Assembly (NCBI GenBank): GCA_015680685.1
Contig: MNCI01002977.1
Location: 62,001 to 126,000 of the forward strand
DNA: 64,000 bases
Direction of reading: 5' to 3'
DNA from: Gnetum montanum
Taxonomy: Eukaryota > Plantae > Gnetophyta
Position 1 is the first letter of the stretch; each line of letters opens with the position of its first letter. Under the pieces are notes generated by a model that was not told the origin of the DNA, made no database searches, and saw only the letters and a list, made by a program, of their open reading frames with translations. Below, in pieces: positions 25,930-53,509 of this stretch. A program made the position numbers and the translations under genes.

Positions 25930-25965
<36 letters not shown>

Positions 25966-28110
25966 AATAAAAATAATACTTATCCACCCCTAGCAAGATG
26001 AATCGAATCTTCTTGGCTTTCAGCGGTCTCGCCTCCATACCAAGCTTCCTTGAACGCTCAACCTTTCTCACCTTGGCCTTGGCCTTCCCGACGGTCTTCT
26101 AAATCAAACACTCAGCTCTCCTAATAGCTGTGTGCATTTTAGGTGGTTTCAACCCCAATTTATCATGCGAATGGTTGGAACGACTAACTGCACCCCCTGT
26201 TGTGATGGAGACTGATTCTTCGATGCCTTCGGGTGGATATTGGCATCTAGTGGTGTTAAATAGATGATGGATCCAGGGGCAAGACAATGGTGAACAATCC
26301 CATAACACATAATGGTTATCTCCATAGACCACTAAGAACTCAACAAACCTACAAAGATAGCCCATGAAAAAGGCAAAGTAAAATGGGATCTAGCATCAAC
26401 ATTCGATCGTAGCCTGATGATCTCTCCATGGAGCCCTAACCCAAGGAACTGTGCCTAATTGTAGCACATACCAGTCTCCAAGACTGAGCGCATAACACGT
26501 GCTGACTCAACCCCAAGATTTCTCTCCTGAGAAAGGGACTTAGGAAATGCTCGTGCTCTGAAGAGCGGATACAAAAAATTGACCTCTGTCAAACAGGTAT
26601 CAACTTGCATAGTAAAACCCTTAGGACCCTGTGGTACACCTAACCAATCCTCAAATTCCTTGATCACACAGCCTTCTCTAGTTCCTCTATCCACCGCCAC
26701 CTTAGCACCATCCACTGGTACACCGAAAAGATCGGAAGGCACTAAATAGGTCCATCAAGCTCGCATTGGTAAGGCAGCTAATGATTTGTTTAGGTACCTT
26801 CTTGTGTAGCCATCGTTGTGACTCCTCTGTCTTTCCAAACTTCATAGAGAGCGTGGCCTCAGTGCGCCTGGATAGAACAGTAACCTCATCAAGAGGAACA
26901 GCCACTGTAGAAAAGACAAAGAAGACATTGAGCAAAAAGTTAAGAGTATGATAAGCAATGATGTAACAAAAATGAAAACCAAGCCTGAAACATAATCATT
27001 CACCGTTAGCAAATGGAGTAGGTACATTTGGTACACGATCAACCATTTGGGGAAAAACTGGCCCATCAAGAGACCAATCCTCATGCAGCCAGCCATAAAC
27101 TTTACAACATTCAAAGGCCCTATAAAATTGCCTAGGATAATTGCTAATAGCACCCTTGGTTTTATCTAGCACCATAGCACGAAGAGTGGGGTCCATCATG
27201 AATGCCTCCAAAGTTGTGCCTGCTAAAGCAAGCCCACTATCATCCTCATGCAATCCATGCCCATCAACACGAGGCCTGTGAAGGCAAAGCATTCATACGT
27301 AAGCAATGATACAACGTTAAAGGAACCAAAGTAAAGATGAGTATAAAAGAGCATACATGTCTACTTTGTACACTGTTCCAGGTGGATTTTGGAACAATGT
27401 ATGCACATAGAAAGCTAGAAAAATAGTGTTACTACTATTGTAATGGCTGCAAGATGGTAATCTCCACACACAGGTCAGGGGACATGTGGATCTAGGGTCT
27501 TCAGGAACACCTCCCTCGACTGTATATAGTCCCTCATCTATGTCAACAACGAAGGCTAACATACCTCATGTTGAGCCAGGCAACATGGTCTCAATAATAT
27601 CACGAGTCAGCTACTCACTCAAATGAGACCATATGACAATGCTAAAATTCTACAAAATAAATGATAGAAATTCACCAACATTTGGACAAAACCATATTAC
27701 ATGAGGCCTGATCCGCATGTCATAGCTAGGTATGTTTGGTTCTAAAAGGCCAAACCAAGATAGCACACTGACAAGTTCAACCACAAGGAGAAAACGCCTA
27801 AGCCCCGTGCATAGAGTAAGAACTTTAGGTAAGTGAATTAAAACATATAAAACATATAAATTAAAAATGAAATAAAATAAGGCAATAAATAAACCCAACA
27901 AGTAAATAATGTTCAACACACTCACGTCACCCCATGAGACAAGGACATCAATGTCTATTTGATGAATGTAATGCTCGTTGGGGTACATTTAAAAAATTCA
28001 TTTACAAATACAAAACATGTACATTCACTGTCTAGCCCAAGAAACTAAAAACAAAAGGGCATAAATAACCAACAACATCGAATGAATAAGTTACTCACAC
28101 ACCAGTTCTA
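24186..28110 (-). pseudogene. Antisense multi-exon gene of B (FCP1/NIF-like domain 27357-27806, helical domain, coiled coil); putative exon 1 displaced to 46533-46654 by insertion C
   Basis: ORF pieces are homologous, in the same order, to C 35736-39410(+) and D 59304-62972(-); GT-AG boundaries at equivalent positions. Confidence 0.8.
25933..25962. repeat. (TA)n microsatellite in a predicted intron of B's antisense gene
   Basis: About 14-15 TA units. Confidence 0.95.
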
Positions 28111-28158
28111 GGGAATTCATGTTATAGTGCACGTTGCAGTAAAAGTAAAAGTGACAAG

Positions 28159-29740
28159 TGTAACGACGGAAAATGTCGGTAGCTAAAAAAAACCAAACAA
28201 AACTCCGTGTACATAGTTTTAACCACGGATCTGTGTAAGGGCTATGCTAGAAAAATGAATTCATGGCACCCTGAATGGTCTTGTCGATCAGACAGGGACT
28301 TACTAAATCAGTAAACCGATGGAAATTACGAATGTTGGGTGGAACGATTTGATTCGACGAGTCGCGAAATGGGGGGAAAACAACGTAGATGAATTATAAT
28401 GATGGTAATGCAAACACGGTAAGAGGAAGCAGACACGAAAGAAACGCGTGGTTTCAAGATCTATGCTTTGACTTGAAGAATGAATATTTTGTATATCACG
28501 TTACAGCGGGGAGACCCCGATTACTTGGTGTAAAGTAAACACAAAATAACAAGAAAGCTGCCTAAGCAGAAGTATAGAATGGAGTCCGATCTACCTCGTA
28601 AGCTAGAGGTGGGATGCAATGAAGGTCAAGTTATGACATCTATCGATCAACTGCTTTTGATCAATAGAGCTCGCAAACTATGCCAGATGATCTCACGATC
28701 TCTGATCTGCTCCTTTTGCCTTGGGTAGTCTCTACTCGGAACTGCCAGCGATCACCAATGGAGAAAGTTGTGTCTTCACCAACGGACCAATCGCTCCTAC
28801 TGCCAATGCTCAAGGAAACTAAGCTCTATCTCTATTAGAATGTGATGCTGTCAAAAATTGCCAAAGTGCTGCTCTCTCTGTTTCTGTCTCTTGTTGTGTA
28901 TCTCCCGTTGTCTTCCTGTCCATCTCTTTATGTTTTCACTAACTGAAGTATTTATAGGTTTGACGACATGTGGAGAAGGCCTGGCTGTGATAACACGTGT
29001 CTCAGACCTTTCGAGATGCCGTTGACCTAACCCTCTTTGTGTTGAACTTTGTGATAATGCACAATACGCTCATTTGCATACTGTGCGTGTGAATAACAAA
29101 TGTGTGTCGGGCATGTTTTAGCTGACTTTGGGCTATATTACGCTCATTCGCGTTGCGTCGGGTGCAAGAGCGTAACAAAGCATGAAAACAAAGGGTTCAA
29201 GCTATTTTACGCTCGCTTGCGTCGCCGAGCGTAGTGAAGCGTAAATGATGATTAGCTTGGCGATGAATTACACTGAGATATGCTACGTTGCGTAACGAGC
29301 GTAAGGTGATCCATCCGCAAGAAAGGGAAAAGAGTTGATCTGTTGCGCTTCTTCTGGACTTTCTTTGACTTTTTCGAAGCTCATTACGCTGCCATGCGTA
29401 ACAGAGCGTAAACTCGGCCTTGGAAAAAAGACTTAGCAAAATACACAAGAAGTCGCATATTACGCTGCTTAAGCCTCTCCAGATGCTGAAGTAAGTCACC
29501 TTCTGATATTAGACTATGTTGAATAGAATCACGCTAAGCGTCATTACGCTATGTCGCGTGATATAGCGTACAGAGATAAAACATAGTGATATTGGAAATC
29601 TGCAAAGAAAATCGAAGACTTGATGCTACGCACCTTTTTGCCTTACTCTGCCTTGTTCTTCCTTCTGGAATTCTGACATGTGCTCTCGCCTGATCGCGAA
29701 TCTTTGCTTGAGGCCAACTCACAATTTTCACGGTGTTTCA
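28159..29740 (-). repeat. 3' LTR of element C (1582 bp)
   Basis: TGTAACGAC...GGTGTTTCA; repeat of 44021-45602; TATA-like CTATAAATA on the minus strand at ~28949-28957. Confidence 0.97.
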
Positions 29741-29753
29741 ATGGACCCTCTTT
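29741..29753 (-). promoter_or_regulatory. Polypurine tract of C
   Basis: Minus strand AAAGAGGGTCCAT abuts the LTR. Confidence 0.75.
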
Positions 29754-30903
29754 GTTGATGGTTAGAGGGCTTGCCCGAAAGATGTCGATAAAGAATACGA
29801 AACACCGGATTGGTGAGAGTACCAACAGCGTCCATCAATGGCTACTCAAGTGTTGCCCTGTCAACATAGAAGAGCAAGAATGGAGGGTATGGGAGATAAG
29901 ATGATTTGGCAGGAAACAGGTTCGAGGAAGACTCAAATAAGTTAGGATGGCGGAACTATGGAATACGCTCGTTGAACATGCAGAAACGTATGCATACTTA
30001 TATTAATAGGAATGCTTTCAGATGAGCGTAGCACATCAGTTTGAGATTTCTCTGTTACAGAATATAGCATGAATGCTTGTAAAAGAAGCACAGCACGTCA
30101 CTTCTACGATATCTCTGCTATGACATTTAATTGCGTTACGCAAGTTTATGGACTTGATGGCAATATGAGTGCGGGAAACGGGTGCTTGCGTGTGTAGCTT
30201 TTGCGTATAAGAAGCAAATGGTAGCATTGAAGAGAATTAAGAGCCAAGGATAGAATTATAAGGGGAAAAGGGGATGCACTTCTAAGTGGACAGGCTAACC
30301 TGAGCAGCCATCTCAAAACGTTGTTTGTACTTCACCGCCTAGATGGATGCACCTTTGAACGATGTCCTCAAAGCAAGTAACCTGCAACCACAAAAGAAAA
30401 CAGAGGATACCATTGTTTGTGCGAATCGTGGGCGAGGTTGTTGAAACAAGTGCCATTAGAGGCGAGATAAAGCGATCGGGCCATGAAGGAGTAACTGTAG
30501 CACGAGGCCAGAGACCTCAATCTTGATGCTCGGCCCAGCATATTGCCGCCAAAGGACGTCAGACTCAGCGTGCCTATCTGGTTATGCAAAAAACTAGCTA
30601 GGTAAATTTGCGAAGCCAGAGTTTGATAGCGATGATCGGCGGAGGTCCCCGAGGTTGTTGTTGACGAGAATCCAGTCGAGGCTCCGGTCGGCGAAACTAA
30701 ACCCTCAGATGTACCACTGCTGTAGTGGGCGCAACGATGGCATCTCCGAGGGGTTAGTAGTATGCCTATTAGCACATCCAAGGAATCAGTAGAATGCCGG
30801 TGGGGTGGCGACGTTGGGATTGTCCCAGCATCCCACCCCGCTTGTTGTGAAGCTGCACAGGGATGATTACGCTCGCTTGATTTTCATGGTGACGACCTGT
30901 AAG

Positions 30904-31428
30904 TCTCAGTTTTAAGTCTTGGTAGACTATTGTTGCTGGTTTTAAGTCTCAGCAGACCATGGTCCCAGTTTAAAGTCCGGGCGGACCGAGAGATGCTAGT
31001 TTTACGTCGTAGCGGACGGTGGTGTGTCTAATTTATGGTCTCAGCAGACCGTGCTGTGGATGTCAGTTTTATGTCATGACCCAAGGACAGATCTGTGCTA
31101 GTTTTACATCTCAGCAGACGGTTGCTTACCTTTGCCAATTTTATGTCATGATGGACAGTTGGTGCCAGTTTAGCAACGTGGTGGATGCGTGCAAAAGATA
31201 CCAGTTTTTCATCTTGGCAGACCTATACAACACTGCCAGTTTTACGTCGTAGCGGATAGTTACAACTTGCCAGTTTAGCATCATGGCGGATGATCAGTGC
31301 CAGTTTAGCATCATGGCGGATGATCAGTGCCAGTTTAGCGTCATGGCAGACGCGTGGGGGGTGTGCCAGTTTTACATCATAGCGGACGTTTGTCACCAAT
31401 TTAACGTCGTAGCAAACGATTGTTGCCA
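30904..31428. repeat. Array of ~16 degenerate ~24-bp repeats (tgccagttttacgtcRtRgcRgac) with 5-13-nt variable spacers, after integrase of C
   Basis: Units read directly from the sequence. Confidence 0.85.
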
Positions 31429-31455
31429 TACCTGATATTCACACTGGAGATGCCA

Positions 31456-34400
31456 CTATATGTAATACCACTTCAGATATATGTGATTGACAGGGTTCAG
31501 CAACTCGTGGCTATCGACATCTGCTAACTTGAATGCTCCGTTGCTGTACGCATCATTCACCAAGAAAGGGCCCTCCCAGTGTGCAGAGAATTTGCTTACT
31601 GGTTTACGAACAGCCTTGAGAACTAAATCTCCCTTCTTGATCGGACGTTGTTGAATATTGTGACGATGCTTTTGCCTCTGCTTGTCTTGATACTTTTCAA
31701 TTGCATCAAGCGTTTGTATTCGCTTCTCCTCCACTGAATCCAAATCCGTGATCTGAGACTCGGTGTGTTGAGCTTCATTTATAATGGTGGAGAGGACCAT
31801 TCTTAGAGAAGAAATTTGCAACTCGAGAGGCAGTACTGCTTCAGACCCGTAGACTAGGCTATAGGGCGTACTACCAGTAGCCGTCCTACATGTAGTACGA
31901 TACACCCATAGCACATAGAAAATTTTTTCGTGCCACCATCTTTTGTTGCTGGCGAGCATTTTCTTGAGCAGATTGATGATGACTTTATTTGTTGCTTCAG
32001 TTTGACCATTTGCTTGTAGGTAGTAGGGAGAGGAAAAAGATTGTTTAATGCCAAGGCTATCACAGAAGGATTTGGTTTCCGTGCTACTAAATTGTGGCCC
32101 ATTGTCCATCACGATAGTAATCGGGAGACCAAATCTGGTTACTATATTGTCTAGGATAAAATGGCAAATCTATTGAGATGTGATCTTCTGTAAAGGAACA
32201 GCTTCTACCCACTTCGTAAAATACTCAGTAGCGGTAATTATGAAGCTATGACCTGCAGAAGATTTCGGCGTGATGGGACCTATGATGTCCAATCCCCATC
32301 GTTGAAATGGCCATGTTATCTGAGTTGTATGTAACTCTGTACGTGACACATGTATCAAATTTGCGTGACGTTGACACGTTTCACAGGTTTTAACCTTTGT
32401 CATGAAATCTTTTTCCATGCGTGGCCAGTAGTACCCTAAGAGTCGGATTTTTAAAGCCATAGCCCATGGTGCTACGTGTCCTCCGCATAATCCCTTGTGA
32501 AACCTCACCAACTATATGCTGCGCTTGGTTCTTGTCAACACAAGTAAGAAGCACGCCATCAAAAGAGCGTCTACAAAGAGTATTGTCTCCTACGATGATG
32601 TATTGCCTAGCCCGCTTGCGGATCGTATCTTTTTGCGCATGTCAATTCAGGCAGTAGCTCGCCCTGCAGGAGGTAATTTTTAATGTTGTCGTACCATTCT
32701 AGCATGCTTTCCTCGAGAAGAGAAGATATTTGTGCCGCCTGAATGATAGGATCTGTACAATCTACTATTAATGCAGAACAGGTGTCGAACAAGTGCGAGG
32801 GTACGTTCAAAGCTAGTGTAGCCAAGGCATCGGCCAGCGTGTTATCAGTGCATGGCACGTGTTGGGCATCGATGGTCATGAACCGCTTCAGAAGATCTTT
32901 AGCCTTATCGCAGTAGGGCTGCAAGTGTACAGCTTTGCAGGCGTAGACTCCTGTGATCTAATTTATGATGAGCATCGAATCACCCCTAATTGCCAAGTGT
33001 TGAACATCAAGTTCGCTAGCAATTAGTAATCCCCTGAGGAGCCCCTCATACTCTGCCATGTTGTTCGTACAGGGGAAGGTTAAGCGATAAGCGTGGAGAT
33101 GCACATCCTCAGGTGATAGCGTAATAACGGTGGCAGCACTGCCACCTCTAGCGGTTGAAGCTCCATCGAAATACAACGTCGCTTCGAGGCCTGTCAAGAC
33201 AGGGCTTAAACTATGTACATGTTCGTCTGGAAACTCAGGCTCTATGGTTGCCTGATTATTAATGGGTGACGTTACTAACTGGTCAACTATCGCCTGCCCT
33301 CTCGTAGAAGATTGGCCAATATAGTGCAAATCGAATTCTGCCGTGATAGCCTTCCAGCGAGCTATTTTGCTACTCTCGTATAGGTTGTGCGTAATGGCCC
33401 TAAGGATGTTGTTTTTACAGATGATGTTAACCTGGCTACGGAAAAGATAATGTCTAGACTTTTTTAGCGTAAATACTAATGCTAGGAAATTACGCTCTAC
33501 TTCGTTGTACCTCGTTTCGTACGCACATAGAGCATGACTCAAGTAGTAGATGGGCACTTCTGACCCATCATCCCTCCTTTGACAAAGTAATGCTGCTAAC
33601 GCTACGTCCGAAGTTACGAGGTAAATGTAAAATGGTTGATCCCTTTGCGGCGGGAAAACTGTTGGTAAGCATTGAAGCTCCTCCTTCAAGTTGTCGAACG
33701 CACGTTGACAATCATTTGTCCATTCGAAATTAACCCCCTTTTTAAGCAAATGTTGCATAGGTTGTAACTTGTCGGTTAATCTAGAAATGAACTACCTGAT
33801 GAACTGTAACCTCCCCTGTAATCCATGTAATTGCTTAAGATTTGTAGGGGGTGCCAATTCAACAATGGCTTTGCCCTTGTCAGGGTCTACGCGTATGCTA
33901 GTTTCCGATACCACGAAACCTAGCATGCATCCGGTTTTAACTCCGAACACACACTTCTTTTGGTTGAGTCGGAGGTCATACTTAGAACATCTTTTGAGGA
34001 CTAACTCTAGATCCTCTGAATGATCCTCTGACTTTATAGACTTAACAGCTATATCATTGACATAATCATTTAGTCTCCCCAGGAGATAATTGCTGAAGAT
34101 GTATGTCATGGCTCGTTGATATGTTGCTCCGGCGTTTTTCAGGCCAAAAGGCATCATAGTGTAGCAAAAGGTGCCCCAAGGTGTCATGAACGTTGTTGTC
34201 AATTGATGTTCTGGGTTAATGTGAATCTAATTATAGCCCGAAAAGCCATCCATGAAGGATAGAGGCGCATGCCCAGCTGTCGTATCTACTAGCTGGTCGA
34301 TACTCGGTAGTGGGAAATTATCCTTGATTGTGGCCTTGTTTAGATCTCGAAAGTCTATGCAGATGCGTATGCTTCCGGTCTTCTTTGGGATGACTACAAT

Positions 34401-34914
34401 GTTAGATACCCAATCCGAGTAATCGACCGCGCGGATGAAACCAGCCTGATACAGTTTGGTGATTTCATCACGCATAGCTAGCTGGCTTGATTTTTGGTAC
34501 CTTTTGCCTAATTGCTTTAATTTGCGGGTCTAAAATTATGTTATGCTACATTAACTTAGGATCTAATCCCAGCATATCCTCGTATGACCACACAAATACT
34601 GTAATGTTGTCTTGCAGGACCTATTTCATAGAATCGTGCGTTTTCTCGTCTAGTAAAGAACTGACTTTCAGCGTTTTGTCCTTACCTTTATGCGTAACGA
34701 TAGAAACCTCATTGAGGAGGTCCTCGATTATGTCCCCAGCTTCCAGGTCTAGCGTGCGCGTTGACTGTTCTGGCCATTCTGGGGACATCTCCGACCTGGC
34801 TATGGTTACGTCGTCAAAGCGAGGGTTAATTTCTACTAATGTAGGGTTGAATTGCCTAACTACTCTCCCGTATGGGCCTGTCAAAGTTAGAGGTGCTAAA
34901 AATGTTGCGTCCAT
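31456..34914 (-). pseudogene. pol: pol remnant of C: RT - RH - aRH - INT
   Basis: RICIDFRDLNKA, MDGFSGYN, MPFGLKNAGATYQR, YVND (mutated YVDD), LYFDGAS, TNNMAEYEGL, RGDS, GLCGGH, WGLDIIG, DNGPQF, WEGPF. Confidence 0.95.
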
Positions 34915-35332
34915 TTGCCCACCGCCCTGCAAAATCGCCAAATGCGTAAATGATTAGGAGAAAGCATGAGGTGGCGTTGTCGAACGTGGAAAGCTAACTG
35001 AATTTTGAATATTGTAAACAGGCTGTGATTAATGCTACCCAATTACGAGATGATAAGATGTGGTAGTTTAACGTCATTTCGGACAGTGGCGCATGTGATA
35101 TCTACCGCATTAATATCTTGATTTTCAGGTTCCGTTTTAAGAAAGTCCCGCTGAAATCGGATATTAAGTCGGTGATTTTCGCATATAAGTAAGTAGTTTT
35201 CGGTGAAAACGGACTGCTGGCTATCGCGAATTCAAATTCCTAACTGTTATGAAGCGAGAGAAAGAGGAGCAGAAGATTGTAACGTGTAACTTGCAAAGCC
35301 GTGAATGTGTGAAGCTTTGAAGGTTTTAAGAC

Positions 35333-38300
35333 TATGACAATGACACCTAAAGTGAAAAGGAAGAACACAAAATTGGCTTAAATTGATGAGGTGCAAGAGA
35401 ATCTGGAGCGTGCTTCGCAGGCAATGGTCGAAGTGAGGGACCCTACGCCCTTGAACCGGTAGGCCGTCTCTTGCATATTTGCGTTATTATAGCATTGTTT
35501 ATTGTTGTAGCGTTATTTGCATAAACGAGGGTTTTAAACTATGGACCTCGCGTTAAGACGAGTGTTTAGAGGGGATTGCGTCTATCGCCGTTGTCAGGGA
35601 CAAGCCTTGCGCTGTTGCAAAGGCTTGGGCGATTTCGACATGGATAACTAGACGTAATTTGTACGTTTTCTGTGTTTAAACACATAAATGTGAATCTAGA
35701 TTTTGATCTGTGTATTGTGTTTTCTGTACAGTGTTATGCTAAAGCCTGTCTTAATCGTCTTGGACATCATTGGGGTTTTGTGCTGTATAAACCCGATCAT
35801 GCCTAATGTCCCTCCCCCGCAAACTTGATTGCATGGGAAGGCCATTTGGTTTCAAAAGGGTGTGCTGGAGTTTCTGCAGTTCTTACTATGCAACTACAAC
35901 GTTATTATATGGTCTGATTTGTCAGGAGATATTGCTGGCGCCATTTTGGAGCACCTGCTAGTGGGTTCCGTACAGGGAATTTTGGCCTTCTTGACAGACG
36001 GAGCCATTGATACTGGTCATCCCGAGGACCGAGAACTTAGCGCCCGAGGTTTGAGGCACTTAGGTTGGATCTGGGAGATGGCCCAGTTTAGTTGTTACCA
36101 CACCTATAACACTCTGTTTGTGGCTCGCCACGTCTCGACCTACTTCCAGAACCCACCAGGCACCATGTAGTACTCAGGCGGGTAAGCGATTTTGTTGGAT
36201 ATATTGTTACATGTCTATTGTCTAAGCTTTGTAAAGTGTAAGATAAATCTATGTGGTATGGTACAGGTTTTTCATTCATGAGAACAGGTTAGTAGGAGAT
36301 GGTGATACGTTGTCATGGACCGAAACGGCAATAAAGGCGTTTACCTCAACTAGCAACGTACGCACTGGTGTGATGGGGTAGATCGGCTTTGACATTCGTG
36401 AGTACCCCACCCGCTATGCTGATGTTTTTGAAAATTTCCAGAAACTCGTGTGGCTACATGATGACTGGACCTTGGATCCACCCCTTACCATTGAGGACGT
36501 GCAGAGGAACCTTCCTTCATTTCCTTTCCCATTTGGACCTAGTAAAACCGCTGCGTATTCTATTGTTGCGTGATGTAGTTGTGAACTGTGAACATTGCGT
36601 AATAATGTTTTTTCCTGAACTATGTCTCACATTGTTTAGTCAGGGAATCCCGGGAGATTACCCTTACAATTTCTGGCCATGAGGCGAATACGGTCCTCTT
36701 CCGCTACGGTGACATCAAGGATGCACAACGCTGGCTTGGCCACGCGGAGGCCCCGGTTGCGGTGGTCACCAAGATCCAAGAAGCGAGGTTATTGCATTTA
36801 TTTTTAGCCGCAACTCCTGATGTCCCCGCTAGTGAGATGCTAACCCTGGTCAACTCCTTCAACAAAAAGGCAAAGCGTTTTTGCACACGCGTTCATAATG
36901 TGTGTGTAAGTTTCGACATTGATGCTCAGCTCTTTACAGACCTTTTTGGCATCCCCTCTGACAGCCTTCCCATAGACGAGAAGGCGAAGAGGAGTCTCGA
37001 CTATCAGAAGTGGCTGGAGGAGTGGGTAAGGGTCACGAAGGAGACTAAAGGGTTTTCTTGTGAACGATTCAAACTAGGCGTCGTCAAGACAATTTATCCC
37101 CTTTTCTGGGCCCAGGCTTTTCCCAAAACGCTCTCGCAAGGGAAGTTCTTTTCTATAGAGCAGACCCATATTATGCGGGAGGTTTTGGAAGAAGGGACCT
37201 AGTTCAATTGGGCAAGATATTTCACTGTGGGACTGCGCACTAAGATGATGAGGCTTCGCCAGAAGCTCGAGTCTCGTTTCAATGTGCATTACGCCTTCTT
37301 CATAGCTTGCCTTCGACGTTTTGCTGAGTTTTTGGTTGTCCAAAGGGATGGGGTTTGGGTGCAACAAGACCGAGACCAGCTATCCAAACCTTGGATTATG
37401 CATATCCTCAGCACTACCCATGGGTAGGATCCTCCAAAAGGGATTGGGAAATCTCTGTCTGTAATGACCAGAGGTTTGGCGGTGCCTCGAGTGCCAGGCC
37501 TCGACAGTGTAGGCAGGATAATGCCTACTTACACTGGCGATGCCTCACGAGGGAAACGTCTGGCGATAGAAATTGTAGAACCTGCAGCTCAGTGTAAAAG
37601 GCTTCGCATAACCGAGGCCTCTGAGAGCAGCGCAGGCTGAACTGTGGTGGTCAGGGTTCAACAGAGTAAGCCTCTGCCTGGTAAGCGTAAAGGAGATGTA
37701 TTGAAAACTGTATGACGCACTGTTTATTCAAGATATTTGAAATGATGTACTAAGAGCATTGTGATATGACCAGTGAAAATTACAGAGAAAATGACCCCTA
37801 AGACAGGGGCAGTGGTACTAATTTGTGGAGAAGGTGCCTCAGTTTTAGAAGGAGAGGCCCCAGCTGTTAGAGTGAGCCACGCACAGACCCTTATGCGTGA
37901 GGAGGTCCTAGCTGGAGGGGCAAGCGACGCACAGACTCATGTGCGTGAAGAGAAGAAAGAGACGGAAGATGTTGGCAAAGTCGCCACTATCACCGGCAGA
38001 GGTAGTGAGCGTATTAGAAATTTTACGTAATTTTGTCAATAATTAGAGTTTCTAACTTGACTACACTACAGGAGAAGAGGATGCCTCCACGTCCGTTGCT
38101 GTGAGCAGAGCGTGGAGAGACTTTCCTGACAAGTTCGCCTTCATGGAAGGTGTTGTCAGTGATATGATCGAGCACCTGGAGCACGTCAAACCTGGAGCTA
38201 GTATGCTGTAGTTATAAAAGGTTTATTTTACTATACAGTAATAATGTGTCATATTGCAGTGATGATGTTTGCTGTTAGGAGCTCGCCTTCGATGGGACCC

Positions 38301-39410
38301 AACGGAGCCCATTGATTTGGACACAGTGGAGCCTCCATATGATGGGGCAGTCGTGCCACGTCACATTTATGAGGAGATGCGTAAATGTGCGTTACGCTCG
38401 ACACACTCCTTATGGGAGAGTAAAGGCATCAATGAAGGCCTTTGGAAAAGGCTGCAGAGGTTAGAGCAGAGGATTGAGGCTCTGACCAAAGAGGTTGGAG
38501 ACCTGAGGTCACGATGCGAATTCCTACAGGCCCGGGAGACGGGCGATGAAGATTGGCGTACCGCTATTATCGACTACTCCCGTTATTGGACCGCCATCAA
38601 AAACAACGTGCAAACCAGTCGGGCGTTGGTAGAGCAACAAATGCAGATAGAGCTCCTAGCTCAGAAAAGCCAGGATTGGAGGGATTACTGTGCAAGCATG
38701 CAAGAGTGGGGGCAGAAGGAAAAGGACCACAAACATTTGTATAAGCGAGAAAGCATCGCTTATCGTAAACTTTATCGCGATTCTGCCGTCAAAGCTCAAT
38801 CCTTGGAAGTCTTCCTTGACGTTATTGGAGCATCTAAGGTCTTCAAGAAGTTGGAAGAGCAAGTGACTGTAAGTGCATCCTCGGAAAGGGAGATGACTCT
38901 CCCAGGGGGCTAGACTACAGTCCCTACATTCTTCCCGGACCCACCTCGCTGGACTGACGTAGAGAAAGAGAAGGTGAAGGCTGGAGCTGCCCTGGGAGAT
39001 GATGTGTGGTCGGACCTAACTAAGGAGGAAATTATGAAGCGCCTATGGGCCGGCCTAGAAAAGATTCCTTTTGCTGCCGAAGCAGGGCCATCGTGAGTAA
39101 TTTTGATCATGGCTAAGTCTAAATTTTTCTATTGCGTTGTTAAGTTTTGTCTTGCTAATATGTTTTCTATATCTAGGTACCCGAAGAGGATAGAGAAGGT
39201 GAGCCGGTTGAGGAGCAAGCACAGGACGAAGAACGCGGAGATGAAGGGCACCCTCCCGTGGAGCCGATACTAGAGCAGGGACCTCATGAAGAGGAGATTC
39301 CTTGTGAAGGAATACTTCCCAGGAGAGAAGGCCTACTAGAGGAGGATCTATCAGGTCTAGAGCCTAATTTAAGAGACACTGGTGACAACGGCATTAGGGG
39401 AGATGCGTAA
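35333..39410 (+). pseudogene. Antisense multi-exon gene of C (about 8-9 predicted exons): FCP1/NIF-like domain 35736-36181, helical domain ~36690-37430, acidic linker, coiled coil ~38430-38870
   Basis: Predicted introns include 36182-36266, ~36542-36643, 37681-37773, 38002-38071, ~38201-38278 and ~39093-39176; protein homology to the B and D copies. The 5' exons are least certain. Confidence 0.8.
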
Positions 39411-39981
39411 TTGTGGTTTACGCATAGTTTTGTTGATGTGAAGTCAAGTAGTGTTTTGTGAATGACTGAAAGACGCGCTATAAGACCTTCTGGTATTTTT
39501 AAATGTCAATTATTATTTTTTTGTCTTTTATGTTTTTATCTTCAAAGCATAAGCGTAATTGTTAAGGATTTTGCCTAAGTTATGGCGATGGAATAGAAGA
39601 GCTAGTTTAAGGCCATTGCGGGCCATATGCGTAATCTGGAGACTAGTTTTAAGCCGTTACGGGCCATCATAGGAGTCTGCGTAGACTAGAAATTAGTTTA
39701 AGGCCGTTACGGGCCATGACGGGCATTCGCGTAATCTGGAAACTGGCCATGACGTAATATAGGAAGCGTAAATGATGACAGTATATAATTCTGCGTAATT
39801 AGGCTAAAGTGATTAAGCAACATGAATAACGTACGTAAAAGAAATGCAATAGCGTAAAGAGATGGCAAGCGTAAAAACTGAAAACTTTTATAGCGTAAAC
39901 ATGTATTGAATGAAAAACAAACTGCTGAATGCAAATAGCGATAGCTGATAAAAATGTAATAATGTGCGTAAATGCCATTCT

Positions 39982-42900
39982 TCAACCATCAATCCTCAGT
40001 TGTCTCTTAATGGCCTTCACATTGAGTGTTGCGTAAGGGCGGAGGGGTTTACGCTCTGACTCCTCCATGTCACCATCCTGAAATGGTAGGTCGGCCCAGG
40101 CTAGCCTTTCATCATTGGTGTCAATTTGTTGAGGGGTTTGGAGATGGGTCTGATCATCCGATGTTTCTATCTCCAAACCTCATTCTTCTTCAATGTTATT
40201 GACAGTCCTGGGGGTGATTTCATCACCGCGAATTACGACCTCTCCTCCAGTGTAGGGTAGGTGTATCTCTTGGTGTATCGATGATGAAACCACCCTCAGC
40301 TGGGCTAACCACGATCTCCCTAAGATCAAGTTGAATCCAGGCATCTCCTCGACGACTAGGAATGTGGCCTCTCTTGGGAATTGATCTCCTGCCACAAATT
40401 CGATACGGACCGTCCCTTTGACCTGAACCTTTGCCCCATTGAACGATTTTACGCAAGCTGTCGTTGTGGGAGCGATTTGGTCACCCAGACCTAACCTATC
40501 CACGATGGAATAAGGAACGACGTTTGTAGCTGTGCCATCGTCCACGTGTACCCTCCGGATTCAGTACTGACCAAACCGAATGGTGATGAACATGGGTTCA
40601 GTTGTCACCTGACCTTTCTCAGGATCGTCTTTGATAGACTCGTCATGAAAGGTCAGCGAGGTAGGCCTAGATTGCTCAGCTTCAGAAGGAAACATGACAG
40701 CATGTATCGCTTCCTCCTCTGCTGGCAAGCTTTCATCCACCAATATGGATGTAAGCATGCGGACCATAGCCTCACGGTGTTCCCAGGATGTCATGAGCAG
40801 GTCGTAGAGGCTCAGCGTTGTATTTTTTTGTTTGAGAGCCTGTTTGACCTACTTAAACGCATCGAGGAGGTCCTTCTCTCGACTGGGTTGTTTATCTCCC
40901 TTGTCCTCTTCCATTCGGCCCAAGAGACGAATCTCTTGAGGTGGAACGGTGTCAGTGGTGGGATTGTTCTTTTTTTTGCCAAGAAGAGGTGGTTGCGTTT
41001 CCACGCCTTTATTCTACTTTTGAGGTACAGGCGAAGGCACAGAGGCCAGGGGCCTAGGCTTAGGGAAGCCGAGCGTAAAATGATCTTTCGTCGCGTTAAT
41101 AGATGTGTCCGCTCCCTTTTGTTTGTCAGGCGACAGTTGACGATTTTGGTTATAGGTCTGCCCCTGCATAAGAGGGGTAGCCGGTGGTTTTGGCACCCTG
41201 ATTATGAAAGGCACCCTAGGCATGGGCGCGAATGAGGCCGCGGCTCTACTGTTACTGCATGGCTGAGTGGAGTTCTGAGAAGGTGCACAGATGATAAAAG
41301 GTGGCCTTGAAGCACCACTAGCTGTCGATGAAGGGTTTGCCTCCTTGTGTGAGTTGGTAGGTACACGCAAAATAAATGGTTGTTTGGGTGGTACTTTCCT
41401 CTCACCGTCCGTACTCACTACGTTGATTGTATAAGGTGCGTCGTTTACATTCAACGAATCCTTATACACGTGCAATTCTTGGTTTTCTGGACGTCTTGGA
41501 CTACTACCGTCTAGTTTTAGATGACCGTCATCGATCATGCATTGAATGTCGTCCTTCAATGCCCAGCAGTAATCCGTGTCGTGACCACATAGCTAGTGGT
41601 AGTCATAGAAATGGTCCAGCCTGAAAGATCTCGAAACTGGTGATTCGTTAGGCAGGGCTAGAGAAGGGTTCTTCAGCAATTCACAATGACGTCTGTGACG
41701 CTTCAGAGCTTCTTCGGATACCCTTTTGGGTTGAATGTGTCCTGACCCTAACAATTGTTTCAACTGTTCTGAATGCTTTACAGGGAGGGTTGTATACTTT
41801 GAGCGATCTTTACGTTCAAAGTTTGGTTTTGGCTGGGGGGCCTTTCAGCGGAAACTTTGTCTTGCCCAGTGCTGCCCGTGCTGGCTGAGACCGTGGTCTC
41901 AGGAGGCGCTGTAGGTGCCTTCTTGTTCTTGTTCTTTGTGCCCTCAGCCAACGCAGCTACTGTCGTCGTCCTTGCCTTCCCTTTATCCTTAGCCTTGTTG
42001 TGCGCATTCTTGTAGGCGACATACACTGGGTCTTTGCTAGCCTCTGCAGCATCTTGAATGCTTCTGATTTGAGCGAAGGCCTGATGTAAAGAGCTAGGGA
42101 AAAGATAATACAGCTTTGACTTGATAAAGTCATTGACTGCTCCTTTGAAGATAGCCAGTAGATGTGAGTCCACGATCGGCTCACGGATTTCATTCAGAGT
42201 AGCACTCCAACGCTGTATGAACTTGTGGACAGGTTCGAGCGGGTCTTGTTTCACCCTCGTGAGCTGATCCAACGTGACTTCCGGCTTTAAGTTGTATTTA
42301 AATCGGGTCACGAATTGTGTCTGTAGCTCTTCCAAGGTTGAGATGGAAGAGCGTGGGAGGGCTCGATAACAATCCAAAGCTTTCCCTGTTAAAGACATGG
42401 CAAAGACTCAGATAATCGTGTGTGGCCACTGTTGTAACAACAAGGACTCAGATCTGAAGGTGACCAAGTGAGCATTAGGATCTCCCTCCCCATTATACTT
42501 GGTAAAATGAGGCAAGGACATCCCCGGTGGCAACGACAGCATAGGGACGGCTGAGTTAATAGGATCATCTTGGTAAAATTCCATGATCTGTACAGTGTCT
42601 GAGCCAGCGGCCTTAAGGTGCCTAACCTCCTCAGTGAGGGTTTGAATAAGTAAAAAGGCTTGGTCTAAACCTGTTGATGGAGGCACCTGCGCAGGAGGAG
42701 CAGGGTGCTGACTCGGGAGAGCAGTGCTAGGGAGTGGAAATGGTGGAATGGCTTGCCCGGAAGATGGTGGGGAGGGGATCCCTACAGGCAGGGGGGCCTA
42801 TGAAGACCACCACCCACCGGTTTGTGAAGAGAGGTTAGCCGCCCCCTGCTGCGCGAAATAGGGATAGGGATATTGCAGGACCGTCTGCGGAACCTGTGTC

Positions 42901-43778
42901 GTGGGTGCAACCAAGGGCTACACACCATATACCACAGGCTGGTTATGTTGCGCTGCGGGATTGGCCCATTGACTCATGGCAGGCTGTTGAATATATGTTT
43001 GAGGCTAAACGACTGCGGTGATATGTTGGGTTGGAGGGGGCAGAAGTGATAAAGTCTGCACCGGGCAAGTTGTGGATATGGTGTGGGATTGAATTTGAGG
43101 GATGAAATCGGGCGTGGTGGTCGCTAGAACCACTACCGGAATGCTGAGTACACGTGGTGAAGATACCGTTCCCATGTTATTGTGGGGTATTTGTACTTGC
43201 AGCCTAGACGGCTGCACGGTGGCTTGCGGAACGACAGGGATATGCATCTGTGTGGTCATGGCTGGGTTAAGAGGGGTGGCTTCTCCGTTGAGCAGGAATG
43301 ATGGATTGACGTAAGTATGGGGGCTCAGAGTGTGGTATGAGTGCTCAGATTGGGCCGCAAACTCATCATCTTCTTCCTCCCCATTCTGGGGTTCCGTCAT
43401 AGCCCGCATAGCCTGGCTCTTGGCCATGACCAACTGTGTTATAATCTCATGTTGATGTTCGGTCAAAGGAATGATGTTGTAGGCTGTTGGGGTGAAATCC
43501 TGACCCCCTCGATGGATCATCTCAAAGTTTCGTTTTGCTTCGATCTCAGCTCGGCTGAGAGCCAGCTTCGCTTGGATCTTAACACAGATAAAGTTATATT
43601 CTTCAGGTGTTATGACCGTGAAAACAGGCTCTTTACCTTGCAGTCTCAATGATCGATGCGATGGTCCTTGCGGTCCTGCTGCACCAAGAGCTGGCCTGGT
43701 GACAGCGATAGGGTTCACAGATGTGGCACCCATATCGGCAGGGACCATGGCGGTTGTGGTTGTGTAAAATGAATCCAT
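39982..43778 (-). pseudogene. gag: gag-protease remnant of element C
   Basis: KYNGEGDPNAHLVTF, SLTGKALDCYRALPRSSI, knuckle near 41560-41610, protease HVDDGTATNVVP...FNLILGRSWL; ends with a stop at 39982. Confidence 0.92.
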
Positions 43779-43997
43779 TAATCAAGGAGATTAACAATAA
43801 CTGACGACTGGATCTAAAAGATGGCTGGCAAAAAGATCGCGGATAAGCTTTCTACCCTGTAGGATTCCAAAGGAATCGTTCCTGTGACCGATCTACACCA
43901 CGTGATTTGCCGTAGACTTCCCTAGAGGTATTACGTCTATGGTTTTGGGTATAAATCACTAACAAGGCTACCCGAAAAATATGGATCGGAGCCAAGG

Positions 43998-44014
43998 CCC
44001 TCCTTCTAGTGCCA
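43998..44014 (-). promoter_or_regulatory. PBS of C (tRNA-Asn)
   Basis: Minus strand TGGCACTAGAAGGAGGG, 6 nt from the LTR end. Confidence 0.88.
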
Positions 44015-44020
44015 GAAAAC

Positions 44021-45602
44021 TGTAACGATGAAAAATGTCGGCAGCTGGAAAATACCAAACAAAATTCTGTGTACACATTTTTAACCACGGATCCGTACGA
44101 GGGCTATGCTAGAAAAATGAATTCGTGGCACCCTGAATGGTCTTGTCGATCAGACAGGGACTTACTAAATCAGTAAACCGATGGAAATTACGAATGTTGG
44201 GTGGAACGATTTGATTCGACGAGTCGCGAAATGGAGGGAAAACAACGTAGATGAATTATAATGATGGTAACACAAACATAGTAAGAGGAAGCAGACACGA
44301 AAGAAACGTGTGGTTTCAAGATCTACGCTTTGACTTGAAGAATGAATATTTTGTATACCACGTTACAGCGGGGAGACCCCGATTACTTGGTGTAAAGTAA
44401 ACACAAAATAACAAGAAAGCTGCCTAAGCAGAAGTACAGAATGGAGTCCGATCTACCTCGTAAGCCAGAGGTGGGATGCAAGGAAGGTCAAGTTCTGATG
44501 TCTATCAATCAACTGCTTCTGATCAATAGAGCTTGCAAACCGTGCCAGATGATCTTGCGATCTCTGATCTGCTCCTTTTGCCTTGGGTAGTCTCTACTCG
44601 GAACTACCAGCAATCACAAATGGAGAAAGTTGTGTCTTCACCAACGGACCAATTGCTCCTACTGCCAATGCTCAAGGAAAATAAGCTCTATCTCTGTTAG
44701 AATGTGATGCTGTCAAAAATTGCCAAAGTGCTACTCTCTCTATTTCTGTCTCTTGTTGTGTATCTCCCGTCGTCTTCCTGTCCATCTCTTTATGTTTTCG
44801 CTAACTGAAGTATTTATAGGTTTGAAAACATGTGGAGAAGGCCTGGCTATGATAACACGTGTCTCAGACCTTTCGAGATGCCGTTGACCTAACCCTCTTT
44901 GTGTTGAACTTTGTGATAATGCAAAATACGCTCATTTGCGTACTGTGCGTGTGAATAACAGATGTGCGTCGGGCATGTTTTAGCTGACTTTGGGCTATAT
45001 TACGCTCATTCGCGTTGCGTCGCGTGCAAGAGTGTAACAAAGCATGAAAACAAAGGGTTCAAGCTATTTTATGCTCGCTTGCGTTGCCGAGCGTAGTGAA
45101 GCGTAAATGATGATTAGCTTGGTGATGAATTACGCTGAGATACGTTGCGTTGCGTAACGAGCGTAAGGTGATCCATCTGCAAGAAAGGGAAAAGAGTTGA
45201 TCTGTTGCGCTTCTTCTGGACTTTCTTTTACTTTTTCGAAGCTCATTACGCTACCATGCGTAACAGAGCGTAAACTCGGCCTTGGACAAAAGACTTAGCA
45301 AAATACACGAGAAGTCACATATTACGCTGCTTAAGCCTCTCCAGATGCTGAAGTAAGTCGCCTTCTAATATTAGACTATGTTGAACAGAATCACGCTAAG
45401 CGTCATTATGCTATGTCACGTGATATAGCGTACAGAGAGAAAACATAGTGATATTCGAAATCTGCAAAGGAAATCGAAGACTTGATGCTACGTGCCTTTT
45501 TGCCTTACTCTGCCTTGTTCTTCCTTCTTGAATTCTGACATGTGCTCTCGCCTGATCGCGAATCTTTGCCTGAGGCCGACTCACAATTTTCATGGTGTTT
45601 CA
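44021..45602 (-). repeat. 5' LTR of element C (1582 bp)
   Basis: Direct repeat of 28159-29740, differing mostly by transitions. Confidence 0.97.
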
Positions 45603-45711
45603 ACAAGGGAACTCATTCACAACATAGACGCTACAACCCACAAACGTGGCTCACACTGTAAATCATGCAATGGCACAACTCACACTGCAGAAGCAATTGA
45701 GAAGTAGTGCT

Positions 45712-46045
45712 AGAACAAAAATCACAGTTTCCCTAGGTAACTCACGCCGAGACAAAAAAATCATAGTTTCCCTGGGTAACTCACGCCTAGACACAAAAAT
45801 CGCAGTTTCCCTGGGATACTCATGTCTAGGCAAAAACAAAAATAAAAAATCAACAAAAATCAGCTTTCTCTAGGATACTCACACCCAGGCCAAAAAACAA
45901 AAAATTAGCAAAAATTAGCTTTCCCTGGGATACTCATGCCCAGGCCAAAAAAACAAAAAATCAGCAAAAATCAAGTTTCCTGTGGCGCTCATGCAAATCA
46001 GAAAAAATAGGTTTTCTATGGGATGCTAACACCCAGGCACAAAAA
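45712..46045. repeat. Tandem array (aaaatcRcagtttccctggRtaactcacgcc...) in spacer of B
   Basis: About 7 degenerate copies of 38-55 bp. Confidence 0.8.
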
Positions 46046-47203: not shown

Positions 47204-50200
47204 ATGGATAGCAACAACCTCTTTTCAACGTTGTCTATCAATGGACCTCACGGGGCCATAAAAAGAGCGATTAATCTAGAATCCTTAGATCTAGACTCAT
47301 ATACTCATGCTAATTTCGTGGCATCCACTCAAGAAACATTAGACTACCCTGAGGGTATGACTAAAAATTTAGACTTAGAAGCCAAGAACATCATTGAAGA
47401 TCCCCTCGTTGAAGTCCCCATCACTATGTCTAGTGGCGAAGTTAAAACATTAAAACTGAGTACTCTACTAAACCCACAACTTGCCAATGACATTACACAA
47501 GTGCTGAAGAACAACATCAAAACATTCGCTTGGTCATATACCGATATGCCAGGACCAGACCCTCGACTCATCAAGCATAACATCATCCTCGATGAAAAAC
47601 TCAGACCAATAAAGCAAAAAGCACAAAAGGTTAAACCTAAGGTAGCATTGGCATTTCATAACAAAGTCACGAAGCTCTACCAAGCCGGCTTCATCCGAGC
47701 TGTTGACTATGCCGATTGGGTATCCAACATTGTTGTAGTTCCCAAGAAGAATAGCAACAGTCGCATATGCATTGACTTCCATGACCTCAACATAGCCACT
47801 ATAAAGGATGACTTCCTGCTACCCAGTATCGATCAACTCGTTAACTCAACTACTTGGCATGCATTCTTATCCTTCATGGACAGATTTTCAGGATACAACC
47901 AAATCAGGATCAACCCGAAACACCAACTCAGGACAACCTTCATGACACCTTGGGGCATGTTCTATTATACAATGATGCCATTCAGTCTCAAAAACGTAGG
48001 TGCTACATATCAACAAGCAATGACATATATATTTAGCGATTATATGCTTGATTCGCTCAACAATTATGTAGATGACATCGTAGTCAAGTCCAAAACAACC
48101 GAGCAACACCTAAAGGACCTAGACCTAGTACTCAAACATTGTCTCAAATATGACCTTAGACTTAATCCAAAGAAATGTGTCTTTGGAGTTAAAACGGGCA
48201 AAATTCTTGGCTTCATAGTCTCAGAAACAGGGATACGAGTAGACCTCGATAAGGTTAAAGAAATAACTAGCATGCAACCACCTAAGAACCTTACCGAACT
48301 ACGCGGCCTGCAAGGTAGACTACAATTCATTAGACGTTTTATTGCAAAATTGACAGATAAGTTGAAACCCATGGAGCATTTACTATGAAAGAATGTCCAT
48401 TTTCAATGGACTCAATAGTGCAAAGAAGCCTTTGAGAACATAAAAATGGAGTTGGCTCAACTGCTGATAGTTCATCCCCCACAAAGCAATAAACCTTTTC
48501 ACATCTACCTCGCGACATCTGATTTATCTATTGCATCTATTCTTTGTCAAAAACGAGAAGATGGAATCGAGATCCCCATTTACTATTTAAGCCATGCCTT
48601 AGTTTCCTATGAACAACGATACAACGATGTGGAGAGATCATGTCTTGCCCTGATCTTTTCCTTGAAAAAGTGACAACATTATCTCTTCCATAACCAAGTC
48701 TATATCATTTGCAAAGATACTGTGCTTCGAGCTATCACTAACAACATCTATGAATCAAGTAATATAGCTAGATGGAAGGTGATGATTGCTGAATTTAACC
48801 TACACTATGTAACTCAATCCTCCACTAAGGGTCAAGAAGTAGTCAATCAAATGACCGCTTCACCAACACAAGATCAAGCATCAATTAACCCTGAATTCCC
48901 TGATGATAATATTAACAGCATCAACATTGTGCCTGATAATTACGATATAATCCTTTACTTCGATGGGGCTTCAACCGCCCGAGGAGAAAGTGCTACGGCC
49001 ATCATAATGTATCCCTCTAGAGAAATTTGACCCTTTTCCTATCAACTAACATTCCCTTGTACGAACAACATAGCAGAGTACGAAAGTATTCTTAGAGGTC
49101 TGGTAGCAGCACTAACTTCGAGAATCACATGTCTTGTAGTCTGAGGTGACTCACAATTAGTAATCAATCAAGTCACAAAATTTTACACATGTAAGGCTTC
49201 TCATTTACAACCATACTATGACCTAACCAAACACTTGCTAAAAGAACTGATGAACGTAGATATGCAACATGTTCCTAGAAACGAAAATACCATCGATGAT
49301 GCACTTGCTACACTAGCCTTAAACATGACACCTGAGATGTTCCATACATTACCTACTTCCATAAAAAATTGTACTAAACCCATAACCGACGCTCTCGATG
49401 AAATACCCATAGCATCCGTCAGTACTACACAGAAGATAGAATGGTATGATGACATAAAGGAGTACCTTCTACATGGCGAACCGTCACAACATCTGATGAG
49501 TGCTAAAAAATACATAGTACGAAAACGCTCTCGGCAATATGCATTAATAGGAGACACATTATGTCATAGATCCTATGAAGGAATTCTATTAGTGTGTGTT
49601 AATAGCATTGATGGTCAAACAATCGTGGAATAGATTCACGAAGGACTTTGCGGAGGGCATATAGCACCCAAAGTAATGGCAATGAAAATTAGACATTTGG
49701 GCTACTACTAGCCACACATGGAGTACGATTGTTTCTCCAGGGTCAAGAAATGTAACATTTTCCAAAAGCATGGTAACCTAATACATGTGCCACCTAATGA
49801 GTTGTATACTACACAAATCACATGGCCATTCCAAAGATGGGGATTAAACATCATTGGCTCGATAACACCAACATCCTCAGCAGGACATAGCTTCATCATC
49901 ACCGTGATCGAATATTTCACAAAATCGGTAGAAGCTATTCCTGTTAGAAAAACCACATCTAAACATGTTTGCAATTTCATATTAGAAAACATCGTGACCT
50001 GCTTTGGTATCCTAATGACCATAGTTACCGATAATGGACCACAGTTCAGCAATACGGATACTAAAAGCTTCTATGAAAGCCTAGGTATTAGACACTCGTT
50101 TTCATTGCCCTACTACCCATAGATCAATGGTCAAGTGGAGTCTATGAACAAAAAGATAATCATGGTGCTCAAAAATATGTTGAATCAAAGCAAGAGACGA

Positions 50201-53325: not shown

Positions 53326-53342
53326 TGGCACTAGAAGAAGGG
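53326..53342 (+). promoter_or_regulatory. PBS of D (tRNA-Asn)
   Basis: TGGCACTAGAAGAAGGG, 5 nt after the LTR. Confidence 0.85.
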
Positions 53343-53509
53343 CCTAAAACTGTTTAAACCCACTCTGATCTCATACACGCACCTCATGCTTCAGATCGGT
53401 ACTCTGGTTTTCCCAGATTCACATTACGCCAACATTAAACTCGATTCTAAACTTCTCGAATCTACACCCTGTTCCACATCATTCTCAACATCTACATGCT
53501 GCACGATCC

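Follow-up and report, generated by a model that had tools for sequence, protein, structure and literature searches.

Organization of the locus

We analyzed a 64,000-nt stretch of DNA from the gnetophyte Gnetum montanum (contig MNCI01002977.1, positions 62,001 to 126,000; hereafter the window, with positions counted from its first base), in which self-comparison identifies four related long terminal repeat (LTR) retrotransposons, here called A, B, C, and D. B, on the plus strand, is the host element, and A, C, and D are nested inside it. Our main subject is element C (28159–45602, minus strand, 17,444 bp), together with a predicted gene, which we call the cargo gene, that lies on the opposite strand between its protease (PR) and its reverse transcriptase (RT). 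Comparison of B, C, and D shows the order gag-protease, putative antisense gene, pol as a trait of three diverged elements.

The LTRs of C were first called at 28153–29741 and 44015–45603 (1589 nt, 94.7% identical) and then trimmed to TG..CA ends at 28159–29740 and 44021–45602 (1.58 kb each). They are flanked by a perfect 5-bp target-site duplication (TSD), ACAAG, at 28154–28158 and 45603–45607, and an element of this layout is hence a real single insertion. Read in the direction of the element, on the minus strand, the 5′ LTR (44021–45602) is followed by a 6-nt spacer and a primer binding site (PBS)-like TGGCACTAGAAGGAGGGCC at 44014–43996, then by the gag-protease module, about 5 kb of further sequence, the RT, RNase H (RH), aRH, and integrase (INT) domains, a polypurine tract (PPT)-like CAACAAAGAGGG at about 29745–29757, and the 3′ LTR (28159–29740). 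The gag-protease module, identified from Pfam matches and tblastn between copies, spans 39982–43775 (minus strand), with gag pieces at 43775–41014, a Retrotrans_gag domain at 41778–42395, and an aspartic protease at 40180–40542, the last two from Pfam. Its frame, reading through one internal TGA, stops near 39982, so that it includes a tail beyond the protease fold (C 39982–40180; B 23404–23700; D 58164–58521) that has no Pfam match and is conserved in all three elements as A[DE]LPF..[ED]GD..NVK.

The pol module of C (31456–34941, minus strand) has a conserved Met-Asp start, after which Pfam places RVT_1 (34472–33792), RT_RNaseH_2/RT_RNaseH (33755–32958), RVT_3, the aRH domain (about 33170–32607), Integrase_H2C2 (32508–32170), and rve (32109–31456), all on the minus strand. 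The pol frame opens at 34941, which leaves an interval of about 5.0 kb (34942–39981, assigned to neither strand) between gag-pro and pol, with the antisense gene inside it, and a distance of 5.7 kb between the protease and RT domains. Between INT and the 3′ LTR there are 1.7 kb, whose open reading frames (ORFs; 74, 77, and 137 aa) have no Pfam match. The original prediction had described C as an intact element with just this order and a gap of about 5 kb carrying an antisense gene, and the LTRs, TSD, Pfam domains, and frames bear out the order and the gap. The word “intact” holds for the structure, which is complete, but not for the coding sequence: pol has at least two frameshifts and at least four in-frame stops, and gag and the cargo gene also contain stops.

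The same layout is found in B, whose gag-protease module lies at 19952–23563 (plus strand; protease domain 23054–23404) and whose pol module (47204–50680, plus strand) joins B’s cargo gene once C and its TSD are removed. Because the TSD of C is intact, the cargo side and the pol side of B were contiguous before C inserted, and with C removed the protease-to-RT distance in B is about 6.8 kb. D has its gag-protease module at 54247–58521 (plus strand; protease domain 57811–58164, stop 58521), followed by the same antisense gene, and its pol falls past the end of the window. That B would match C after removal of the insertion, and that D would show gag-pro followed by the same antisense gene, had both been proposed beforehand; the intact TSD and the resulting PR-RT distance confirm the former, and tblastn the latter.

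The LTRs of the three elements differ in length (B about 1.9 kb, C 1.58 kb, D 1.26 kb). The 5′ LTR of B is of the A type and begins about 220 bp before the window; it is split by A, and both pieces are collinear with A’s LTR. The 5′ LTR of D lies at 52058–53320 (plus strand, 1.26 kb), and the internal sequence of B ends about 120 bp short of its PPT, exactly at the start of this LTR. Because B breaks off exactly there, D is read as a third insertion, nested in the 3′ internal region of B, with the 3′ LTR of B presumably beyond the window.

An antisense gene between protease and reverse transcriptase

In C the cargo gene occupies 35700–38913 on the plus strand, antisense to the element, with a stop codon at 38911–38913. 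Its coding sequence falls into blocks at 35700–36167 (NIF/FCP1-like), 36298–36570, 36606–37424 (orphan), 38056–38208, and 38266–38913 (coiled coil), all on the plus strand. When the ORFs of the C gap are used as tblastn queries, homologues are found in both B and D, again antisense and right after the protease, with E values of 1e-15 to 1e-36. The copy in B lies at 24352–27988 (minus strand, antisense to B) and has a short first exon with its ATG at 27988, and that in D lies at 59487–63005 (minus strand, antisense to D), where the longest exon ORF spans 61034–61948. The copies have diverged so far that blastn finds no DNA similarity between the cargo of C and that of B or D, and the cargo proteins of B, C, and D are 34–51% identical, aligned over 440–590 codons. 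Each copy carries one or more stops. The long non-conserved stretch between the third and fourth blocks of the C cargo also contains a 48-nt tandem duplication (37854–37949, 73% identical).

Identities between the cargo copies are 0.44–0.69 at first, 0.61–0.78 at second, and 0.29–0.52 at third codon positions, the third being near random. For B versus D, the pair with unsaturated synonymous divergence, the ratio of nonsynonymous to synonymous substitution rates (dN/dS) is 0.18–0.30, below 1 as had been asked of the gene in advance. By these codon-level measures the cargo is evolving under purifying selection. Furthermore, the dN of the cargo stands in a nearly constant proportion to that of gag plus protease, at 2.05 for B and D, 2.11 for B and C, and 2.02 for D and C. 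Since the two are proportional, the gene was present in the common ancestor of B, C, and D and inherited with the element, and was not captured three times. The original prediction, noting the differing LTRs, had likewise called the layout a lineage trait and not a one-off capture, and the common site and orientation, the selection, and the dN ratio of 2.0–2.1 agree with it.

The same prediction had the gene containing introns, which the conserved GT-AG boundaries and the phase of the first junction corroborate. The coding blocks are separated by about 85–115 nt that open with GT straight after the last conserved codon and close with a pyrimidine-rich tract and AG. Two GT-AG junctions are seen in all three of B, C, and D, with identical intron phase in all three at the first, and three further junctions are common to B and D; a short first exon with an ATG and then GT is present in A and B. 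Taken together, the aligned copies show at least five predicted GT-AG introns at conserved positions, and searches with the spliced cargo model were run exon by exon.

If the cargo were a mobile unit of its own, it might be expected to carry its own ends, which had been set out as a test against the reading. No terminal inverted repeats (TIRs), LTRs, or long direct repeats flank the cargo module. Arrays of the motif ATGGCC..GGCCTTAAACTA were considered as possible ends of the cargo and rejected, because they are also present after the integrase.

A cargo-less relative

Element A (1263–18913, minus strand) is a relative of the B type that sits in B’s 5′ LTR, with LTRs about 85% identical and a TSD of ATCCC. 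Its gag and pol are about 85% identical in nucleotides to those of B, and of the cargo it has just a 5′ remnant, roughly the first 150 nt (9754–9907, plus strand). In its interior (8171–14535), B’s protease and nearly all of the cargo are replaced by foreign sequence, including an ORF of 421 aa (9837–11102, minus strand) that encodes a different aspartic protease (DSGA), 23% identical to the gag-PR of C; an assembly gap (Ns) in A spans 11388–12081. A therefore looks like a recombinant, cargo-less derivative. As it has a TSD, such a derivative could still insert, presumably helped in trans.

The predicted protein of the cargo gene

The first large cargo exon matches the Pfam family NIF (PF03031) in the D copy only, at 16.4 bits (gathering score 21.8; E 0.007). 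A three-copy profile of block 1 has its best PDB match in UBLCP1, a phosphatase of the FCP/SCP family (E 0.012, below the family threshold), and a low-confidence structural model of the block (pLDDT 52) has a strand-helix order that fits the haloacid dehalogenase (HAD)/FCP fold. When this model is searched with Foldseek, all E values are above 0.05; TIM50 heads the list, and Fcp1, UBLCP1, and CTDNEP1 are among the top rows. The position inferred for the DxDxT motif, placed from the predicted strand, reads DIIGV in C, ELVGV in D, and ELVSV in B, so with this placement no copy retains the second catalytic aspartate, and C alone retains the first. The DD motif, also by inferred placement, reads LA, VA, or LA. 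With these residues lost, phosphatase activity is not expected. With moderate confidence, then, the first cargo exon is probably a dead NIF/FCP1-type phosphatase domain. It resembles the NIF/FCP1/SCP family, which includes the non-catalytic TIM50, in its weak NIF and UBLCP1 matches and its HAD/FCP strand-helix order, but differs in that all its scores are below the family thresholds and in its altered DxDxT and DD residues.

The central block, of about 310 predicted residues, is an orphan as judged by its sequence matches: none is found in Pfam and none in the PDB profile search. A HMMER profile of this block run against 1.84 billion representative proteins returned one match (E 3.5e-4), a repetitive protein that we judged unrelated, and an AlphaFold model of the block (pLDDT 37) was discarded. 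The last exon has weak matches of the coiled-coil type alone, and a separate metagenome scan with the C-terminal block found nothing. A protein search whose length window would exclude the full-length product gave no homologues of the cargo exons.

Accessory ORFs of Tat elements can encode a plant mobile domain (PMD), and we also compared the cargo with such proteins. No piece of the cargo has a Pfam PMD match at E values up to 10. The PMD/DUF7745 extra ORFs of Ogre-like contigs (metagenome loci L002, L006, L011, and L052) gave hhalign probabilities of 0.3% with the central block and of 0.4% with the C-terminal one, a comparison whose power is limited by the shallow alignments. A PMD reading of the cargo is unsupported as it stands. 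Language-model look-alikes of the central block do include PMD and DUF1985 clusters at 0.82–0.85, where scores under 0.9 are leads only. In host genomes, PMD proteins pair with or are fused to phosphatase-like proteins of the PP7 type, which act on the silencing of transposons (PMC7156037). This is a parallel only, as the PP7 and NIF folds are unrelated and a PMD is not confirmed in the cargo.

Relationship to Tat elements

The domain order RVT_1, RT_RNaseH_2, RVT_3 (aRH), Integrase_H2C2/rve, found by Pfam in C and repeated in A and B by tblastn, fits the Tat clade of the Ty3/gypsy OTA superclade, whose order is PR-RT-RH-INT and which is defined by an extra, archaeal-type RNase H (aRH). The best protein matches to the RH segment of C are Tat-type proteins of pea, Silene, Mucuna, and Vicia, at 31–38% identity, and a metagenome scan recovered 80 plant-derived contigs with RH-aRH relatives at 29–37% identity. 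None of these 80 Tat relatives carries a homologue of the cargo. In the 11 contigs in which both domains were found, the PR-RT distance is 1.1–1.7 kb, shorter than the 5.7 kb of C and the 6.8 kb of B, and in the better-preserved Tat contigs the stop of gag-pro is some 200–640 nt from the opening of the pol frame. Two of them, L003 and L006, are organized like a typical Ogre: a GTAA donor overlaps a stop, some 200 nt of T-rich spacer come next, and the start of pol is marked by another stop and then TGCAG|. Since these relatives have short PR-RT spacing and no cargo, the cargo-bearing gap is, on present sequence comparisons, specific to this lineage and not general among Tat elements. Among the Ogre-like plant contigs of the JGI metagenomes we also observed sense ORFs upstream of gag that match DUF7745 (L002:2037–3713, L006:1666–2439, and L052:19167–20489). 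The DUF7745 match in L002 covers the same residues as PMD, and the two families therefore seem related.

In Ogre elements, the gag-pro ORF and the pol ORF are separated by a non-coding spacer, reportedly a partially spliced intron (PMC6317226, PMC4408406). The elements described here share with Ogre (Tat lineage IV, of pea and Medicago) the fusion of gag to protease, a separate pol ORF, aRH between RH and INT, an accessory ORF, and the stop-then-acceptor arrangement at the start of pol. However, the Ogre spacer averages 274 bp, while that of C is about 5.0 kb and that of the family 5–7 kb, with a gene inside. In addition, the extra ORF of Ogre is sense, upstream of gag, and encodes a PMD, while the cargo is antisense, multi-exon, and not detectably related, and the RH of C is only 31–38% identical to that of angiosperm Tat proteins. 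The leaders of the family (245–900 nt) are repetitive and hold no ORF, and the N-terminal gag ORF has no PMD match, so the sense PMD ORF by which Ogre is recognized is not found here. The “split-pol” label of the original prediction is right in that a split is present, but it is more exactly an Ogre-type gag-pro/pol split with a greatly enlarged spacer.

Extra ORFs of Tat elements were surveyed by Ustyantsev in 2015, who placed them at the 3′ end in antisense or at the 5′ end in sense and also noted the gag-PR fusion and the Ogre intron; these ORFs encode a PMD or a PMD plus coiled coil, and their position has changed before (PMC4408406). Gymnosperm Tat elements of lineages III and V have an antisense extra ORF for a PMD or PMD plus coiled coil (PMC4408406), and Retand has antisense ORFs between pol/integrase and the 3′ LTR (PMC11963269, PMC7264820). 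For gene23 of Grande, transcription from its own promoter and a nuclear product have been reported (PMC7264820, PMC11963269). Like our family, Retand, Grande, and RIRE2 (Tat lineage VI) and lineages III and V carry a conserved antisense accessory gene in a Tat element. Those genes, however, are found downstream of integrase, before the 3′ LTR, and their product is Transposase_28 or PMD, while the cargo splits the coding region and has several introns. The long POL-3′ LTR region with an antisense Transposase_28 ORF that marks Retand is absent from C. Outside plants, the HBZ gene of HTLV-1 is spliced and transcribed from its own promoter. HBZ is similar to the cargo in being an antisense accessory gene in a retroelement (cited in PMC7264820, PMC11963269), but it is located at the 3′ end, with its start inside the 3′ LTR, does not separate PR from RT, encodes an unrelated protein, and belongs to an animal host.

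Our full-text literature search, which left some key subscription papers outside its scope, turned up no account of a gene lying between protease and RT. In the surveys and reviews consulted, the positions given for extra ORFs are all either upstream or downstream of gag-pol (PMC6317226, PMC4408406, PMC7264820, PMC11963269, PMC13468544), and a 2026 survey of Tat structures across land plants mentions no internal gene (PMC13468544). Within the literature searched, the architecture is thus undescribed, as had been supposed.

Proposed expression of pol and of the cargo gene

Ahead of pol, elements A, B, and C have a conserved CAG|G followed, after 10–13 nt, by the Met-Asp start. A and B also have a stop 8 nt before the CAG|G, an arrangement shared with the Ogre-like contigs. 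In C, a candidate sense intron of 5,094 nt can be drawn from the inferred donor AAT|GTGAAG (40021/40020) to the inferred acceptor TTTTGCAG|GGC (34927/34926), both in phase 0, which gives an open junction; the counterpart of this donor in D reads AAT|GTTAAG. Another candidate donor, TC|GTAAT, just past the protease domain, was discarded, since the ORF continues beyond it into a tail of conserved coding sequence. The leaders of the elements hold no conserved sense donor.

From these features we propose an expression logic with three modules, which is an inference from sequence. Unspliced sense RNA would serve both as genome and as gag-pro mRNA, and Pol would come from spliced sense RNA ending at the conserved CAG|G acceptor ahead of the Met-Asp start. 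This spliced RNA would either encode an Ogre-like gag-pro-pol fusion or be a subgenomic mRNA using pol’s own ATG. The cargo, head to head with pol, would be transcribed from a promoter of its own, and its introns, being antisense, would not be recognized in the sense genomic RNA and so would survive reverse transcription. An intron-bearing gene would persist in a retroelement only in antisense, which would explain both the orientation of the cargo and its retained introns. The retained introns also argue for acquisition of the cargo as unspliced sequence and not as a mature mRNA. Its product, probably composed of a non-catalytic NIF/FCP1-type (HAD-fold) domain, the orphan domain, an acidic linker, and a coiled coil, would most likely be a regulatory or scaffold factor for the element, acting for example in transcription or in evasion of silencing.

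Interpretation

We think it probable that these elements represent a Tat-clade Ty3/gypsy lineage, sharing with Ogre and Retand the gag-protease fusion and an aRH between RH and INT, in which an Ogre-type gag-pro/pol spacer has grown to 5–7 kb and permanently houses an accessory gene on the opposite strand. Several observations weigh against this. Every copy from A to D in the window is mutated, and no intact master copy is seen. The sense splice model is in frame in C only, B has no candidate donor, and the acceptor phase of A and B differs from that of C, where a single phase match has a one-in-three chance of arising at random. The NIF assignment is drawn from sub-threshold matches and a low-confidence model (pLDDT 52). 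Lastly, since the cargo-less A still inserted, the cargo is not needed in cis.

That the cargo is no part of the element at all, but a transposon in its own right or a host gene that inserted into each copy, or that the layout is an assembly chimera of gag-pro-only and pol-only elements, seems to us barely credible. Nesting is rife in the window, with A, C, and D all inside B, and A contains an assembly gap, both of which would suit such an origin. However, position and orientation are identical in three elements with different LTRs, the cargo co-diverges in proportion to gag plus PR, and no TIRs, LTRs, or TSDs surround it, while the matched LTRs and TSD of C enclose all three modules and that same TSD proves the contiguity of B. 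There is a somewhat larger, though still small, chance that the layout has already been described for some Tat lineage, against which stand the outcome of our literature search and the exclusively upstream or downstream placement of extra ORFs in surveys and reviews. A relocated classical Tat extra ORF of the PMD plus coiled coil type, which would make the novelty positional only, deserves more weight than that, if we still consider it unlikely. Such ORFs have the right composition and have moved before (PMC4408406), the cargo ends in a coiled coil, the look-alikes of its central block are PMD and DUF1985 clusters, and there is a weak DUF1409 match. On the other side, the Pfam and hhalign comparisons with PMD proteins are negative for the cargo, its profile found only an unrelated repeat protein among 1.84 billion representatives, and the look-alike scores are in the range of leads.

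A different question is whether, within the same architecture, pol is spliced to gag-pro at all. Pol could instead use its own ATG on a subgenomic RNA, made through a leader donor or from an internal promoter that is possibly bidirectional and shared with the cargo. Foamy viruses likewise make a separate Pol mRNA. We regard this as a serious contender, although on balance we lean away from it. The Met-Asp start is conserved in A, B, and C in a GCAnATGG context, preceded within a few codons by a stop in A and B, no donor is kept in all copies at the end of gag-pro, and conservation of the gag-pro tail extends as far as its own stop. The leaders, however, lack a conserved donor, the junction in C is in frame, and in Ogre-like relatives a stop followed by an acceptor likewise serves a gag-pro-pol splice (splicing reported for Ogre, PMC6317226). 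More speculative, and in our view rather doubtful, is an obligately three-part element. Here Pol would be made solely by splicing out a 5-kb intron that houses a divergent multi-exon gene, competition between the strands would set the Gag:Pol:accessory ratio, and a dead CTD-phosphatase-like scaffold (CTD, C-terminal domain) would target the host's RNA polymerase II or its silencing machinery to the advantage of the element; such elements would be undescribed because annotation rules cap the PROT-RT distance.

Returning to the probable reading, of an enlarged Ogre-type spacer with a resident antisense gene, what is new is an accessory gene at an internal site of a Tat/Ogre-type element, multi-exon and with a product that belongs to a new protein family. 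The element itself does not constitute a new class. In plant LTR retrotransposons, accessory genes have been described only upstream of gag or downstream of integrase, and the present case suggests that an Ogre-type spacer can act as a cargo bay. It also offers a natural case for studying how introns are retained in a gene carried by a retroelement and how Pol can be expressed beyond an interval of several kilobases. The accessory protein, with its probable NIF-like dead phosphatase, orphan domain, and coiled coil, has no credible match among 1.84 billion representative proteins. Finally, DANTE_LTR rejects domain clusters whose neighbor distances exceed lineage thresholds (PMC11358816), and this rule may split such elements or count them as truncated, which would bias repeat annotation and could explain the absence of reports.

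Other features of the window

The PBS-like 19-mer TGGCACTAGAAGGAGGGCC is common to all four elements (C 43996–44014; B 19386–19405; D 53326–53345; A about 16972–16990) and begins 4–6 nt past the end of the LTR in each, without abutting it. Rfam and tRNA scans of the window returned no RNA genes. Single N bases are present at 11288 in A and at 58600 in D, the latter in the post-protease region and inside a motif array. Short motifs of the form ATGGCCCnnnnnGGCCTTAAACTA or GTCCGAAATGACGTTAAACTA, which do not mark the ends of the cargo, recur in the element sense in all four elements (C 39610–39744, 35071, and 31004–31106; B 23706–23865 and 50756; D 58554–58781; A 8248–8277 and 4589), and they occur after the gag-pro stop, before pol, and after integrase. 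Tandem-repeat arrays, which are typical of non-chromovirus elements, are found in the leaders of A (16487–16802) and D (53512–54126), upstream of the D cargo (63073–63317), and in B just past the insertion site of C (45793–45971).

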